From Macrostomum lignano (lineage: Eukaryota), in contig NIVC01002303.1 in the NCBI GenBank assembly GCA_002269645.1, positions 1 through 59,727 of the forward strand: a stretch of 59,727 bases of DNA. The letters run 5' to 3'. The notes beneath the pieces were generated by a model. That model was not told the origin of the DNA, did not search any database, and saw only the letters and a list, made by a program, of their open reading frames with translations. Every line of letters starts with the position of its first letter. Positions within the stretch are counted from its first letter, which is position 1. Positions 13,425 to 49,082 of the stretch are shown here, in pieces. The position numbers and the translations under genes are program-made.

Positions 13425-16400
13425 ATGCGCTTGCCACTAAAATTTCTGCTGGCAGTCGCCTGTCTGACCGCTGTCGTCTCCAACCCGGATGACGACCCGG
13501 ACGACAGGCCGGAAGTGCACATCCTCATTGCCATTTCTAAGGAAATTCCATTCTTCAACGAGGTCCATTATTTCAACTATTCGATCCGATACTTGAACAC
13601 CCGGATGGAATTGTTTCCAAGCTTCAAGCTGAGGCCCGACATTCGACTAATCAAAGGGGTACTTTGTTATTTTGTTGCGAACTTGACGTTTTTCTTGTTT
13701 TATTGCAAGAATTACTTAGTTAGTTAGTTAGTTAGTTAGTAAGTTAGTTAGCTAGTTAGTTAGTTAGCTAGTTAGTTAGTTAGTTAGTTAGTCAGTCAGT
13801 CAGTCAGTTAGTTAGCTAGTTAGTTAGTTAGTTAGTTAGTTAGTTAGTTAGTTAGTTAGTCAGTCAGTCAGTTAGTTAGTTAGTTAGTTAGTTAGTTAGT
13901 TAGTTAGTTAGTTAGTTAGTTAGTTAGTTAGTTAGTTAGTCAGTCAGTCAGTTAGTTAGCTAGTTAGTTAGTTAGTTAGTCACTTACTTAGTTAGTTAGT
14001 TAGTTAGTTAGTTAGTCAGTTAGTTAATTAGTTAGTTAGTTAGTTAGTTAGTTAGTTAGTTAGTTAGTTAGTTAGTTAGTTAGTTAGTTAGTTAGTTAGT
14101 TAGTTAGTTAGTTAGTTAGTTAGTTAGTTAGTTAGTTAGTTAGTTAGTTAGTTTAGTTAGTTAGTTAGTTAGTTAGTTAGTTAGTTAGTTAGTTAGTTAG
14201 TTAGTTAGTTAGTTAGTTAGTTAGTTAGTTAGTTAGTTAGTTAGTTAGTTAGTTAGTTAGTTAGTTAGTTAGTTAGTTAGTTAGTTAGTTAGTTAGTTAG
14301 TTAGTTAGTTAGTTAGTTAGTTAGTCAGTTTGTTTTTTTAGCTAGTTAGTTATCTAGATAAGCATCAAAAATTGATTTTGTTATAATCCCCCAGGAATTT
14401 AACAAATCAGTAGCAATATTGTTGTCTGTCAGGAAAATTTTAATACAAAGTGTATTTATGGCCCTACATGCTGGTCCATTGTTTGAATTCTAAAGCAAGG
14501 GTGGACACTATATAAAGAATCAGCGATATTGTTCTCAGCAAAAGTCAACAACTCTCAGTTGCTATGCTGAGAGCTTCAACAGCCTCAAGAGTGAATTTGA
14601 TTAATTTAAACCTTTCAGACTGATTGCTTTTCGCCATGGAAATTTGTATTACAATCAGCAGAAATTTTGTCGCCACAATTAAGTAAATGCAACGTATCTC
14701 AAATACACAATTAACAGCAGGAAGACGTTGGCGCCGCTCTGAAGGCTTTTGTTGACGGCTACCTCAGCGGCAGCAACAAGGCGCTGATGCTGGGCGCCAG
14801 CTTCTCGCAGCAGTCTCAGGTCATTGCTGAGCTGGCCCGCTACTACTGTGTGACTCAGGTGAGAGACTGTGGCTAAACTGTGTGACTCAGGTGAGAGACT
14901 GTGGCTAAACTGTGTGACTCAGGTGAGAGACTGTGGCTACTGTGTGACTCAGGTGAGAGACTGTGGCTAAACTGTGTGACTCAGGTGAGAGACTGAGGCT
15001 AAACTGTGTGACTCAGGTGAGAGACTGTAGCTAAACTGTGTGACTCAGGTGAAAGACTGTGGCTAAACTGTGTGACTCAGGTGAGAGACTGTGGCTAAAC
15101 TGTGTGACTCAGGTGAGAGACTGTGGCTAAACTGTGTGACTCAGGTGAGAGACTGTGGCTACTGTGTGACTCAAGTGAGAGACTGTGGCTACTGTGTGAC
15201 TCAGGTGAGAGACTGTGGCTAAATTGTGTGACTCAGGTGAGAGACTGTGGCTAAACTGTGTGACTCAGGTGAGAGACTGTGGCTAAGCTGTGTGACTCAG
15301 GTGAGAGACTGTGGCTACTGTGTGACTCAGATGAGAGACTGAGGCTACTGTGTGACTCAGGTGAGAGACTGTGGCTAAACTGTGTGACTCAGGTGAGAGA
15401 CTGTGGCTAAACTGTGTGACTCAGGTGAGAGACTGAGGCTAAACTGTGTGACTCAGGTGAGAGACTGTGGCTAAGCTGTGTGACTCAGGTGAGAGACTGT
15501 GGCTAAACTGTGTGACTCAGGTGAGAGACTGAGGCTACTGTGTGACTCAGGTGAGAGACTGAGGCTAAACTGTGTGACTCAGGTGAGAGACTGTGGCTAA
15601 ACTGTGTGACTCAGGTGAGAGACTGTGGCTAAACTGTGTGACTCAGGTGAGAGACTGTGGCTAAACTGTGTGACTCAGGTGAGAGACTGTGGCTAAACTG
15701 TGTGACTCAGGTGAGAGACTGTGGCTAAGCTGTGTGACTCAGGTGAGAGACTGTGGCTAAACTGTGTGACTCAGGTGAGAGACTGTGGCTAAATTGTGTG
15801 ACTCAGGTGAGAGACTGAGGCTAAACTGTGTGACTCAGGTGAGAGACTGTGGCTAAACTGTGTGACTCAGGTGAGAGACTGAGGCTACTGTGTGACTCAG
15901 GTGAGAGACTGAGGCTAAACTGTGTGACTCAGGTGAGAGACTGTGGCTAAACTGTGTGACTCAGGTGAGAGACTGTGGCTAAACTGTGTGACTCAGGTGA
16001 GAGACTGTGGCTAAACTGTGTGACTCAGGTGAGAGACTGTGGCTAAACTGTGTGACTCAGGTGAGAGACTGAGGCTAAACTGTGTGACTCAGGTGAGAGA
16101 CTGTAGCTAAACTGTGTGACTCAGGTGAAAGACTGTGGCTAAACTGTGTGACTCAGGTGAGAGACTGTGGCTAAACTGTGTGACTCAGGTGAGAGACTGT
16201 GGCTAAACTGTGTGACTCAGGTGAGAGACTGTGGCTACTGTGTGACTCAGTGAGAGACTGTGGCTACTGTGTGACTCAGGTGAGAGACTGTGGCTAAATT
16301 GTGTGACTCAGGTGAGAGACTGTGGCTAAACTGTGTGACTCAGGTGAGAGACTGTGGCTAAACTGTGTGACTCAGGTGAGAGACTGAGGCTAAACTGTGT

Positions 16401-48400: not shown

Positions 48401-49082
48401 GTGTTGGCTTGGGTGTGGGGTATGGAATGTGGGCTAAGGTGTGGGCTTGAGTGTGGGCTGGGGTGTGGGCTGGAGTGTGGGCTGGTGTGGGTTGAGGTGT
48501 GTGCTGGGGTGTGGGCAGCAGTGACGGCAGCAGTGACGGCAGTAGTGTAGGAGGGTGGTACGAAACCAGCGTCCACGTCGCGCCCCTGGACACCCCGCCA
48601 ATGTGGCAGGAGCTCCGTGCGATCCTGCCATCGACGGGGTGACGAATTGGTCTCACATCCGGGTATACAGTCTGGGGGAGCTGTCCCGCCGGGACCCGGG
48701 TCCCCTCGCTTTCTGGCCACTCTCTGCAGGCCGCAAATTGGACTCCACCGTCTACTGTCCGCCCGCACGGAGTCAGCGCTTTGGCTGCATGGTGCTAGAC
48801 ACCCGGTCCTATTGGCTAGCCAGAATGACCGCGACCCGAAGAAGAAGAAGAAGCAGTATGGGAAGCAGTATGGGAAGCAGTGTGGGAAGCAGTGTGGGAA
48901 GCAATGTGGGCAGTGCAGTGAGGGCAGCAGTGATGTCGCTTAGACTTCCTGAATTAGTTCCGCCCGCATCCTGACAGGTGTTGACCATCCTGAAGGACAG
49001 GAGCGTCAGGGTGGCGGACGCCAGTGCGGTCATGCAGTCGAGGCAACCAACTACTGGATATGAACATCGCAGCGGGGAATGA
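42474..49082 (+). CDS. Class C GPCR, GABA-B-receptor-like, copy D (divergent VFT; exons 2-13; exon 1 not found)
   Basis: Exons: 42474-42614, 43727-43894, 43978-44055, 44141-44215, 44325-44516, 45016-45255, 45697-45760, 45848-45925, 46227-46606, 46694-46816, 47913-48248, 48978-49082 (stop TGA). The frame stays open throughout. Intron positions and phases match B/C. Confidence 0.87.
42602..43680 (+). repeat. Exon 2-donor 30/32-bp minisatellite, copy D (~34 units)
   Basis: Same unit as in B and C. Confidence 0.95.
44595..44970 (+). repeat. 22-bp minisatellite (CACCCAGTGTTATCACAGCTGG), intron 6 of D
   Basis: Unrelated to the GATGTC repeat in the equivalent intron of A-C. Confidence 0.95.
45295..45478 (+). 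repeat. 9-bp repeat (ACAACCCAG), intron 7 of D
   Basis: Unrelated to the 18-bp repeat in intron 7 of A-C. Confidence 0.93.
46798..47855 (+). repeat. 56/58-bp exon 11-donor minisatellite, copy D (~18 units)
   Basis: Same unit as in A-C. Confidence 0.95.

Follow-up and report, generated by a model that had tools for sequence, protein, structure and literature searches.

The window analysed here, a 59,727-nt stretch of Macrostomum lignano DNA (contig NIVC01002303.1 of assembly GCA_002269645.1), carries four closely related receptor genes, A to D, arrayed head to tail on the + strand with a period of ~12.7 kb. Gene B (13425..25819) is intact, with 13 exons (13425-13658, 14718-14858, 18220-18387, 18547-18645, 18735-18809, 19491-19679, 20741-20983, 22714-22777, 22858-22935, 23828-24207, 24295-24417, 24947-25282, and 25688-25819), an open frame of 2262 nt encoding 753 aa, and GT-AG boundaries at 12/12 introns. 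Gene C (29747..38266) is likewise intact, its 13 exons (29747-29968, 30647-30787, 30910-31077, 31556-31654, 31746-31820, 33079-33267, 34025-34267, 34950-35013, 35103-35180, 35539-35918, 36006-36128, 37271-37606, and 38135-38266) encoding 749 aa; the M. lignano UniProt model P0167 is 100% identical to it over exons 2-3 (102 aa) and reproduces the exon 2/3 junction exactly. Gene D (42474..49082), upstream of which lie TE-like foldback repeats, retains intact exons 2-13 (42474-42614, 43727-43894, 43978-44055, 44141-44215, 44325-44516, 45016-45255, 45697-45760, 45848-45925, 46227-46606, 46694-46816, 47913-48248, and 48978-49082; 659 aa) and is 98.5% identical to another M. lignano UniProt model, P0002, which is also 5'-partial. 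Gene A (1066..8010) is truncated at its 5' end by the window start, leaving exons 6-13 (1066-1257, 1890-2128, 3861-3924, 4005-4082, 4710-5089, 5177-5299, 7120-7455, and 7879-8010), which were mapped from gene B and have all splice sites conserved. Its exons 8-13 are intact, while in exons 6 and 7 the frame is broken, as compared with B, by ~10 indels of one base and a single indel of 4 bases. All modelled introns are GT-AG, and the reading frames are unbroken in B, C, and exons 2-13 of D. On these gene models, B and C look functional, A is frameshifted, and D has no detectable first exon.

A preliminary description of this DNA had reported a tandem cluster at 13425-49082, which runs from the ATG of gene B through the end of the gene D stop codon. 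The cluster of B to D was borne out, but the account was incomplete, having overlooked the fourth copy, A, and the missing exon 1 of D. Since gene A sits upstream of this range, the array runs off the window. In the search for exon 1 of D, neither tblastn nor blastn (word size 7) revealed in 38267-42473 any similarity to the first exon and intron of B/C or to the sequence upstream of them; within 38.3-42.5 kb, Smith-Waterman alignment with the peptides encoded by exon 1 of B and of P0005 gave no credible match, and a scan for an ATG followed by a hydrophobic segment gave no credible candidate. The UniProt models P0004, P0067, and P0166 fuse the end of one array copy with the start of the next, which would provide independent support for the tandem order if they were built on an assembly other than that of the window.

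Two alternative exon boundaries were set aside. First, the long open frame 22984-24474 contains a 24-nt repeat that could be read as a coding Pro/Ser-rich linker; this was rejected because several frames are open through the repeat, exon 9 is in another frame and runs into stop codons, splicing to the acceptor at 23826-23827 brings the sequence back into frame, and the paralogue P0005 joins the 14 residues at this junction directly. Second, a donor used by UniProt inserts VGGQG after TM7; the upstream donor was preferred to it because the insertion is absent from the paralogues P0005 and P0006 and from GB1/GB2.

The proteins encoded by the intact copies combine a signal peptide with a Venus flytrap (VFT) of the ANF type and a class C 7TM, and have no cysteine-rich domain (CRD). 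Specifically, the first 19 residues of gene B are signal-peptide-like, ANF_receptor (PF01094, E 1.9e-35) covers residues 50-403, and 7tm_3 (PF00003) covers residues 454-708, the latter at E 1.7e-39 in B and 2.7e-39 in D with 241/251 profile positions covered. These were the only Pfam domains, the cysteine-rich NCD3G giving no match at E<=1e-3, and the linker from the VFT to TM1 is ~25 residues long and free of Cys, in agreement with the absence of a CRD as originally described. The AlphaFold model of a D-type protein (mean pLDDT 87.5) likewise passes from the VFT directly into the helical bundle. Beyond TM7, B and C have a tail of 43 aa and D one of 34 aa, and pLDDT is <50 from residue 639 on; judged from tail length and pLDDT, a C-terminal coiled coil of the kind that pairs GB1 with GB2 is not predicted. 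Further, the 7TM keeps motifs in common with GB2, the G-protein-coupling subunit, at the end of TM3 (AKTWRVH) and in TM6 (AWETR...ALNDSK).

In sequence and fold searches of the PDB, strong matches were confined to GABA-B chains. Against the PDB, phmmer gave 257 bits to fly GB2, 231 to human GB2, 222 to fly GB1, and 212 to human GB1, compared with 60 to GPR156 and <=48 to mGluR. With the AlphaFold D-type model as query, the top 27 Foldseek matches in the PDB were all GABA-B chains (E 1e-42 to 1e-30, TM ~0.6, reaching 0.64-0.66 to inactive-state GB1 chains), as opposed to E 1e-26 or worse and TM 0.37 for mGluR and CaSR. The array genes are thus CRD-less class C GPCRs of the GABA-B superfamily lineage, as first proposed. 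In a neighbour-joining (NJ) tree (Kimura distance, 200 bootstraps, no outgroup), the Macrostomum proteins formed their own clade in 200/200 replicates, outside both the GB1 clade (Xenopus, Ciona, Haliotis, and a nematode; 200/200) and the GB2 clade (Pogona and insects, recognised by means of 6UO8_B and 9JQX_B fragments; 197/200), and were sister to either in 0/200. Their nearest neighbour, a Lamellibrachia 'GB2' (155/200), may reflect a long-branch artefact, the Macrostomum family being a long branch. This phylogeny supports orthology of the array genes to neither GABBR1 nor GABBR2, in keeping with the earlier expectation that they would not be 1:1 orthologues.

The residues with which GB1 contacts GABA were located by two independent MAFFT alignments, a mapping by sequence alignment anchored on the Haliotis GB1 orthologue, the numbering of which reproduces W65, S130, G151, S153, H170, Y250, and W278. 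Exon 3 (18220..18387 in B, 30910-31077 in C, and 43727-43894 in D) holds the equivalents of G151-S154 and H170 (IGLNLSP...RMSTT in B), and exons 5-7 of B (18735..20983) hold those of Y250 (IAVRSIAA), W278 (QMGLP), and E349 (the G in NGFDTRFD), as well as the conserved D355. The motifs cited previously lie where they were reported, in + strand frames directly after AG acceptors: GLNLSP at 18223 and 30913, GLNPSP at 43730, RMSTT at 18277, RMSIT at 30967, and RMATT at 43784, with AVRS (B and C) or AIRA (D) in exon 5 and MGLP (B), MGLL (C), or IGLP (D) in exon 6. Both alignments also agree with the reported loss of S153 (L/L/P in B/C/D), H170 (S/S/A), Y250, and W278 (L in all three). Depending on the placement of a 3-residue indel, Y250 becomes S/S/A or A/A/V, with no aromatic residue in the segment either way. 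E349 is replaced by G in B, C, and D, and W65 by E in an ungapped hand alignment of B and C. S130 and D355, on which the preliminary description was silent, are kept in B/C/D, and S130 is the only GABA contact retained (1/8). With seven of the eight contacts replaced by small or aliphatic residues, canonical binding of GABA or baclofen by B/C/D-type proteins is very unlikely on this mapping. Across B/C/D and the 55%-identical paralogue P0005, the mapped positions read S; L/L/P/T; S/S/A/A; S/S/A/S; L/L/L/F; and G, and are hence nearly invariant.

The loss of these residues had been presented as remarkable, a view that the wider family does not sustain: among the 102 GABA-B-family sequences tabulated, only 5, all GB1 orthologues, have the full contact set. 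It is likewise absent from GB2 (rows P0019 and P0014, in which all contacts are missing), from one insect clade that is presumably GB3-like, from dozens of 'GB1/2-like' paralogues of hemichordates, amphioxus, molluscs, corals, and annelids, and, overall, from approximately 95 of the 100 GABA-B-like representatives of other invertebrates. Among invertebrates, orphan GABA-B-like paralogues that lack the contacts for GABA are the rule. As most invertebrate relatives share this lack, the finding is real and only moderately unusual.

Similarity among the copies of the array is uneven. Exons 10-12 of B (23828..25282, + strand), encoding the linker and the whole 7TM, form a homogenised block with 98-100% nucleotide identity to 4710-7455 (A), 35539-37606 (C), and 46227-48248 (D), and exon 2 of B (14718..14858, + strand) forms a second, 92-97% identical to 30647-30787 (C) and 42474-42614 (D). 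B and D have 99.3% amino acid identity over the 7TM, compared with 64% over the VFT. The high-identity stretch between B and D begins just upstream of exon 2 and extends into a minisatellite in intron 2 (14845..18190 in B, + strand), of which the 32-nt unit, containing the exon-2 donor CAG|GTGAGA, occurs in 105 copies in B, 3 in C (30774-30880), and 34 in D (42601-43682). A 24-nt minisatellite in intron 9 (22999..23813 in B, + strand; 4145-4695 in A, 35249-35524 in C, and 45968-46212 in D) marks the 5' edge of the homogenised 7TM block, and a third in intron 11 (24399..24896 in B, + strand; 5281-7061 in A, 36110-37215 in C, and 46798-47862 in D) has units of 56-58 nt in which the final 18 nt of exon 11 and its donor recur. 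B and C are 86-100% identical per exon at the nucleotide level, with dS 0.07 and omega 0.19-0.44, and the VFT exons of D have a saturated dS of ~2 and omega 0.18. Gene-wide omega (0.18-0.44) is that of purifying selection, with no sign of diversifying selection at this level.

Because exon 2 and the 7TM exons are near-identical across the copies, at 94-100%, while the D VFT diverged anciently, these patterns indicate gene conversion across the array copies. In the scenario we propose, A, B, and C would be recent tandem duplicates (dS ~0.07) and D an old paralogue, of which exon 2, the 7TM exons 10-12, and the adjoining introns would have been overwritten by conversion from its neighbours, unless D was itself the donor. 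Intronic minisatellite arrays common to all copies coincide with the block edges.

The wider family appears restricted to Macrostomum. Relatives with >45% identity are exclusively M. lignano proteins, the next best being ~30% identical; P0002 to P0008, P0067, P0125, P0166, P0167, and P0169 are all from this species. A second tandem array on NIVC01001840.1 carries at least 3 copies of a 47%-identical subfamily. A word-indexed protein search returned 1, 3, and 9 matches, almost none beyond M. lignano, and these counts are no measure of family size. The family seems small, with ~13 mostly fragmentary models that perhaps represent 6-10 loci. These observations support the lineage-specific (Macrostomum) expansion originally inferred. 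That GABA-B genes are normally few, as also stated then, holds for vertebrates and insects but not for many other invertebrates: a search of cluster representatives with the D-type UniProt model P0002 as query recovered 2661 at E<=1e-3, and the hemichordate Ptychodera has at least 4 distinct GABA-B-like paralogues. At the Ptychodera locus inspected, the gene spans 82 kb and has no neighbouring copy in the flanks covered.

Taken together, the window probably contains the 3' end of a tandem array, in M. lignano or a near-identical strain, of a Macrostomum-lineage subfamily of orphan 'GABA-B-like' receptors. Each protein would consist of a secreted VFT joined to the 7TM by the short Cys-free linker; the flytrap would bind some other ligand, or none, as in GB2, and the conserved motifs, the basis for this step, suggest signalling through the receptor's own 7TM as dimers. 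The genes belong to a grade of uncharacterised invertebrate 'GABA-B subunit 1/2-like' paralogues (Ptychodera, Glandiceps, Branchiostoma, Acanthaster, Haliotis, Montipora, Lamellibrachia, and Capitella) that are similarly orphan and CRD-less, do not have the set of GB1 binding residues, and number several per genome; Drosophila GABA-B-R3 presumably falls in the same grade. However, these are only ~25-31% identical to the window proteins (41% over the 7TM for a Capitella fragment), with no orthology established, and the tandem array with a converted 7TM is shown here for Macrostomum only. GABBR1 (4MS3, 6UO8_A, and Haliotis P0029) has the same fold and shares S130, D355, and the Cys of the FC...NC pair, but the window proteins have W65, S153, H170, Y250, W278, and E349 all replaced, lack sushi domains and a coiled coil, and fall outside the GB1 clade.

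The preliminary description had proposed a candidate chemoreceptor or orphan array, functionally analogous to vertebrate V2R/T1R clusters. As environmental chemoreceptors, the proteins would have VFTs diversified for external ligands (such as amino acids, peptides, and mate or food cues) and would be expressed in sensory cells, like V2R/OlfC/T1R. Those families are also VFT-bearing class C receptors that form tandem multigene clusters through lineage-specific expansion; however, they have a CRD and belong to the CaSR/mGluR branch, and they number tens to hundreds of genes with demonstrated sensory expression, whereas the scale in the window is small. Such a role would fit tandem arrays at two or more loci, their restriction to Macrostomum among database sequences, and a ligand-binding half that differs between D and B/C (64% aa) while the signalling half is kept (99%). 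Further, canonical GABA-B signalling that would need these genes is unreported in flatworm surveys (PMC6114109, PMC9645230). Nevertheless, we consider this role unlikely, given the small family, the absence of visible diversifying selection, and eight pocket positions that are nearly invariant even in P0005; moreover, the near-identical 7TMs are accounted for by gene conversion, which spans introns too, rather than by selection. A modular variant, which we regard as distinctly unlikely, is a Macrostomum sensory family on the GABA-B scaffold, in which old flytrap modules (B/C-, D-, P0005-, and P0006-types) would serve different non-GABA ligands, and conversion mediated by the intronic minisatellites would keep one shared 7TM module across neighbours. 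If true, a class C system for chemoreception would exist independently of V2R/T1R, and in a phylum from which metabotropic GABA-B-type receptors have been reported absent. Searches of the literature on flatworms turned up no specific description of GABA-B-like expansions or of class C chemoreceptors.

Alternatively, the array genes could be highly diverged GB2 co-orthologues that, with a ligand-free VFT, pair with a putative M. lignano GB1 to transduce GABA. GABBR2 (human 6UO8_B and Drosophila 9JQX_B) shares the VFT, the short CRD-less linker, and the class C 7TM, gives the top PDB sequence matches (231-257 bits), has a VFT that lacks every GABA contact, and carries the AKTWRVH and AWETR..LNDSK motifs, making the 7TM GB2-type rather than GB1-type; the outgroup-free NJ tree and the long Macrostomum branch also leave room for a very divergent GB2 origin. 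Yet we give this only a slim chance. Identity to GB2 is only ~30%, the window proteins were never sister to its clade (0/200), and their 34-43-residue cytoplasmic tail leaves no room for the GB1-GB2 coiled coil, in contrast to the long C-terminal tail of GB2. In addition, GB2 is a single gene, and an obligate partner subunit would not usually exist as several divergent, tandem paralogues. Published flatworm GPCR surveys, in which M. lignano was not among the species covered, report no GB1 (PMC3261222, PMC6114109). Finally, it is highly improbable that the array consists of pseudogenes in decay or of haplotypes that were falsely duplicated because the genome is polyploid and rich in repeats: the ~11 frameshifting indels in exons 6-7 of A, the absence of exon 1 from D and the foldback repeats upstream of it, and the minisatellite-packed introns would fit such an origin, but B and C have 13 intact exons with conserved splice sites and omega well below 1, the D VFT retains omega 0.18 over saturated dS, UniProt models bridge adjacent copies, and the copies differ in sequence and minisatellite length and so are not collapsed duplicates.

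Orphan receptors of the GABA-B-like subfamily that we favour bear on the view of GABA signalling in flatworms. Surveys of GPCRs in Schistosoma, Schmidtea, Fasciola, and monogeneans describe GABA-B-type receptors as unreported from the phylum and suggest purely ionotropic GABA signalling (PMC3261222, PMC6114109, PMC9645230). The array shows an early-branching free-living flatworm with GABA-B-superfamily receptors in several tandem copies; since its proteins are not predicted to bind GABA, the conclusion of the surveys on metabotropic GABA signalling may still hold. Other members of the superfamily also do not serve as canonical GABA receptors. GPR156 is one, although it lacks a VFT and scores only 60 bits; the Dictyostelium Grl family is another. 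The latter is likewise a lineage-specific expansion, of 17 genes (PMC3261222).

A specialist would find the array interesting, not surprising. What is new here, as the conserved exon 2 and 7TM set against the ancient D VFT indicate, is domain-restricted homogenisation, and the array would offer a clean case of such concerted evolution, in which the 7TM is homogenised, selection has conserved an old flytrap, and intronic minisatellites common to the copies border the blocks. M. lignano is tractable by transgenesis and RNAi, so the function of the array genes is testable.

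Comparison of the window with itself revealed a head-to-tail repeat with a period of ~12.7 kb, set in intron-rich eukaryotic DNA dense in minisatellites and carrying four forward-strand GABA-B-like receptor genes, A to D. We assembled gene models manually, relying on open frames, GT-AG sites, and continuity of frame. Gene B (13425-25819) comprises 13 exons with GT-AG at every intron and encodes an uninterrupted 753-aa protein with a signal-peptide-like N-terminus. Its projection onto the next copy yielded gene C (29747-38266; 13 exons, 749 aa), with all splice sites conserved, while exons 2-13 of gene D (42474-49082) are intact and encode 659 aa. 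The preliminary description had placed a cluster of GABA-B-lineage receptors at 13425-49082; this range holds for B to D, down to the exact end of the gene D model at 49082, and leaves out a fourth copy upstream, gene A (1066-8010; exons 6-13), the 5' part of which is cut off by the window start. The motifs on which that description relied were recovered in forward-strand frames, GLNLSP at 18223 and 30913 and GLNPSP at 43730, with an AG acceptor directly 5', and RMSTT (18277), RMSIT (30967), and RMATT (43784) directly 3' of AG acceptors. In copy A, exons 6 and 7 (1066-2128) have lost their reading frame: compared with B, they show one 4-nt insertion and about ten 1-nt indels, the latter mostly in short homopolymer runs. 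Exons 8-13 are free of indels; the affected stretch represents either localised pseudogenising decay or low-quality assembly.

At the other end of the array, similarity of D to B and C begins just a few bases 5' of exon 2, and four search methods found no exon 1 of D in the C-D spacer. This spacer holds two foldback-type inverted repeats that occur in neither the A-B nor the B-C spacer. The first (39493-40455) has arms of ~320-360 nt, made up of 14-nt tandem repeats and a 136-nt unique part, the latter 98% complementary, around a 281-nt loop; in the second (40748-41000), an inverted repeat of 82 nt (99%) encloses a spacer of 89 nt. The two resemble insertions of MITEs or foldback elements, which may account for the missing 5' end of gene D. 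Downstream, a minus-strand exon at 57988-58413 encodes a POLR2J-type Rpb11 dimerisation domain (RNA_pol_L_2, E 1.3e-26), so that the receptor array stops at gene D, with unrelated housekeeping DNA beyond it. A 324-aa ATG-initiated ORF, also on the minus strand, within 55955-56932, has a C-terminal hydrophobic segment (FYFFLVVAGTVVVAVIMTFLIV) and may be the gene of a single-pass membrane protein; its 326-aa stop-to-stop translation gave no Pfam match.

The array genes belong to the branch of class C receptors that lacks the cysteine-rich domain, namely the GABA-B branch, as the preliminary description had proposed and as Pfam domains, PDB sequence scores, and structural matches jointly indicate. 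Specifically, Pfam identified ANF_receptor and 7tm_3 and nothing else in B and D, with the NCD3G cysteine-rich domain not found in either. A PDB sequence search with B scored highest against GB2 (Drosophila, 257 bits; human, 231 bits) and GB1 (Drosophila, 222 bits; human, 212 bits), followed by GPR156 (60 bits) and mGluRs (<=48 bits). For structure, we used P0002, a M. lignano UniProt model that is 98.5% identical to gene D over 665 aa and 5'-partial from the same residue. In a Foldseek search of the PDB, its AlphaFold2 model (mean pLDDT 87.5, pTM 0.73, from a 57-sequence alignment) matched GABA-B chains in all of the top 27 positions (E 1e-42 to 1e-30), with mGluR and CaSR next (E 1e-26 or worse, TM ~0.37). 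The best TM-scores (0.64-0.66) were to inactive/apo GB1 chains and the worst to agonist-closed GB1, indicating that the flytrap of the model is open, and the structure comparison did not discriminate between GB1 and GB2.

Within this branch, the Macrostomum proteins stand apart. With P0002 as query, a full HMMER scan over 1.84 billion cluster representatives returned 2661 proteins at E<=1e-3 (250 at E<=1e-30), among which only M. lignano proteins, its sole close database relatives, stood above 45% identity (P0005, 58%; P0006, 47%; P0008, 45%; and P0125). All other matches were ~25-33% identical, those from outside Macrostomum coming from hemichordates, amphioxus, sea star, abalone, chiton, corals, tubeworm, and insects and bearing the automatic names "GABA-B subunit 1-like" or "2-like". 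We set the GB1 clade by diagnostic motifs and names (Xenopus P0055; Haliotis P0029, named "GABAB receptor alpha1 subunit"; Ciona P0145; nematode P0073) and the GB2 clade, which includes Pogona P0019 and insect P0014, by BLAST with fragments of PDB chains 6UO8_B and 9JQX_B. In a neighbor-joining tree of 102 sequences (702 trimmed columns, 200 bootstraps), which is distance-based, has no outgroup, and places the family on a long branch, the Macrostomum proteins (B, C, D, and the P0005 paralogue) and GB1 were each monophyletic in 200/200 bootstraps, and GB2 in 197/200. One-to-one orthology with GABBR1/2, the result that would have spoken against a lineage-specific expansion, was not recovered, the Macrostomum clade being sister to GB1 or to GB2 in 0/200. 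Its nearest neighbor (155/200) was a single Lamellibrachia protein on a long branch, which we do not trust as an orthologue. Orphan GABA-B-like paralogues are widespread among invertebrates, and a survey of the GABA system reports duplications at the base of the GB1 and of the GB2 clades (bioRxiv 10.64898/2026.09.08.749565).

Pocket residues were numbered after the Haliotis GB1 orthologue, in which YGSSSP, RTHPS, GVFY, and IGWY lie at the exact GBR1b positions (W65, S130, G151, S153, H170, Y250, and W278) and E349 is shifted by one residue, and positions were mapped by two independent MAFFT alignments and an ungapped hand alignment of the conserved flanks. The four substitutions previously read by eye proved correct: in B/C/D, S153 is L/L/P, H170 is S/S/A, Y250 is S/S/A (or A/A/V if a 3-residue indel is placed otherwise), and W278 is L, with no aromatic residue anywhere in the Y250 segment. 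Beyond these, E349 is G, and W65 is E, the latter in B and C only, while S130 and D355 are kept. Across the 102 sequences, five GB1 orthologues alone kept the full GABA-contact set; at least H170 and E349 were absent from GB2, from an insect clade regarded here as GB3-like, and from all remaining "GB-like" paralogues. At the sequence level, then, absent GABA contacts are the norm outside GB1. The Macrostomum family falls, like GB2, at the degenerate end of the range, since S130, Y250, and W278 persist in many non-GB1 "GB-like" sequences.

The 7TM domain is intact, with AKTWRVH at the end of TM3 and AWETR..ALNDSK in TM6, motifs common to the array proteins and GB2, and the C-terminal tail is short (34-43 aa). 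Such proteins would be signaling-competent dimeric class C receptors. From the pocket residues, we infer that they do not bind GABA canonically; the VFT would bind either another ligand or none, as is possible by comparison with GB2, whose VFT is without ligand. Tandem expansion and VFT divergence are the only observations from which a chemoreceptor role, by analogy with V2R/T1R, might be argued, and they have to be weighed against a small family, purifying omega values, and pocket positions nearly identical among paralogues. The phylogeny and the missing coiled coil make a role as GB2-type partner subunits less likely, as do surveys reporting GB1 to be absent from flatworms, although M. lignano was not among the species examined (PMC3261222, PMC6114109, PMC9645230). 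UniProt and NCBI already list the array proteins, as uncharacterised "G_PROTEIN_RECEP_F3_4 domain-containing" entries, and no published description turned up in a literature search. The new findings are modest: an expansion of the GABA-B superfamily in a flatworm, and domain-restricted concerted evolution within its array.

This concerted evolution is evident in the distribution of nucleotide identity. Exon 2 of B, C, and D shows 92-97% identity and exons 10-12 show 98-100% across all four copies, while in exons 3-9 and 13 the identity of D to A, B, and C is just 53-83%. The B and D proteins have 64% identity in the VFT and 99.3% in the 7TM; in the other paralogue pairs, VFT and 7TM diverge together (55% vs 63% and 46% vs 48%). 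The high-identity blocks take in introns (94-96% identical), and their edges fall in the intron-2 32-mer and intron-9 24-mer arrays common to all copies. By the Nei-Gojobori method, the VFT cores of B and D have a saturated dS of ~2.0, dN of 0.34, and omega of 0.18, and B and C have a dS of 0.07 and omega of 0.19-0.44. We read both VFT types, B/C and D, as being under purifying selection, and hence as having both been functional. A, B, and C would be recent tandem duplicates. D would be an old paralogue in which gene conversion or unequal exchange has homogenised exon 2 and the 7TM module with those of its neighbors, a process for which the shared minisatellites are plausible seeds.

Two of the intronic minisatellites start inside an exon/donor boundary. 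The 32-mer of intron 2, which contains the donor CAG|GTGAGA, spans 14845-18190 in B (105 copies), 30774-30880 in C (3), and 42601-43682 in D (34). The 56-58-mer of intron 11, which repeats the last 18 nt of exon 11 and a GTAACA donor, spans 5281-7061 in A, 24399-24896 in B, 36110-37215 in C, and 46798-47862 in D (32, 9, 20, and 19 copies, respectively). Because each unit carries a donor, every gene has 3 to 105 identical candidate donors in series. Between genes, AT-rich arrays (GC ~0.32-0.35) of a 23-nt unit (GACATGACACTTCTTTTATGTTT) occupy 9637-13039 in the A-B spacer (~150 copies) and 27544-29361 in the B-C spacer (~80 copies), with none in the C-D spacer, and a very G-rich 77-nt minisatellite with strong GC skew (49713-51278; 20 copies, 96% identity) lies directly 3' of gene D. 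At ~1730 nt, intron 7 of A and B exceeds that of C (682 nt) and D (441 nt). The additional sequence (21400-22300 in B, about 2600-3450 in A) includes a minus-strand ORF at 21871-22257 whose winged-HTH match (HTH_29, E 2.6e-4) is weak and below threshold; this ORF may be what is left of a transposase.

Database models from M. lignano bear on both the arrangement and the extent of the family. P0167 matches gene C at 100% identity over the exon 2/3 junction. Three others (P0004, P0067, and P0166) join the last exon of one copy to exon 1 or 2 of the next; these and P0007 splice out of the terminal-exon region, in an alternative frame, into exon 1/2 of the next copy (e.g., window 25600-25820 joined to 13407-13660, and equivalents). 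Such models point either to artefacts of prediction or to transcripts that cross the array, by read-through or as polycistronic RNAs, and they provide independent support for the tandem arrangement only if built on a different assembly. P0005 (UniProt A0A1I8GNL1, 3732 aa) fuses a retrotransposon gag-pol-like polyprotein to a complete 711-aa paralogue, ~55% identical to B and with YSNTSP at the site of YGSSSP; it is a chimeric prediction that still gives a full-length member of a third subfamily. In all, ~13 M. lignano database models, many fragmentary or chimeric, fall into at least three subfamilies. The subfamily of P0006 (47% identical) lies on contig NIVC01001840.1 of assembly GCA_002269645.1, where at least three copies, all on one strand, make up a second tandem array within 22.7 kb (105228-127917, reversed).
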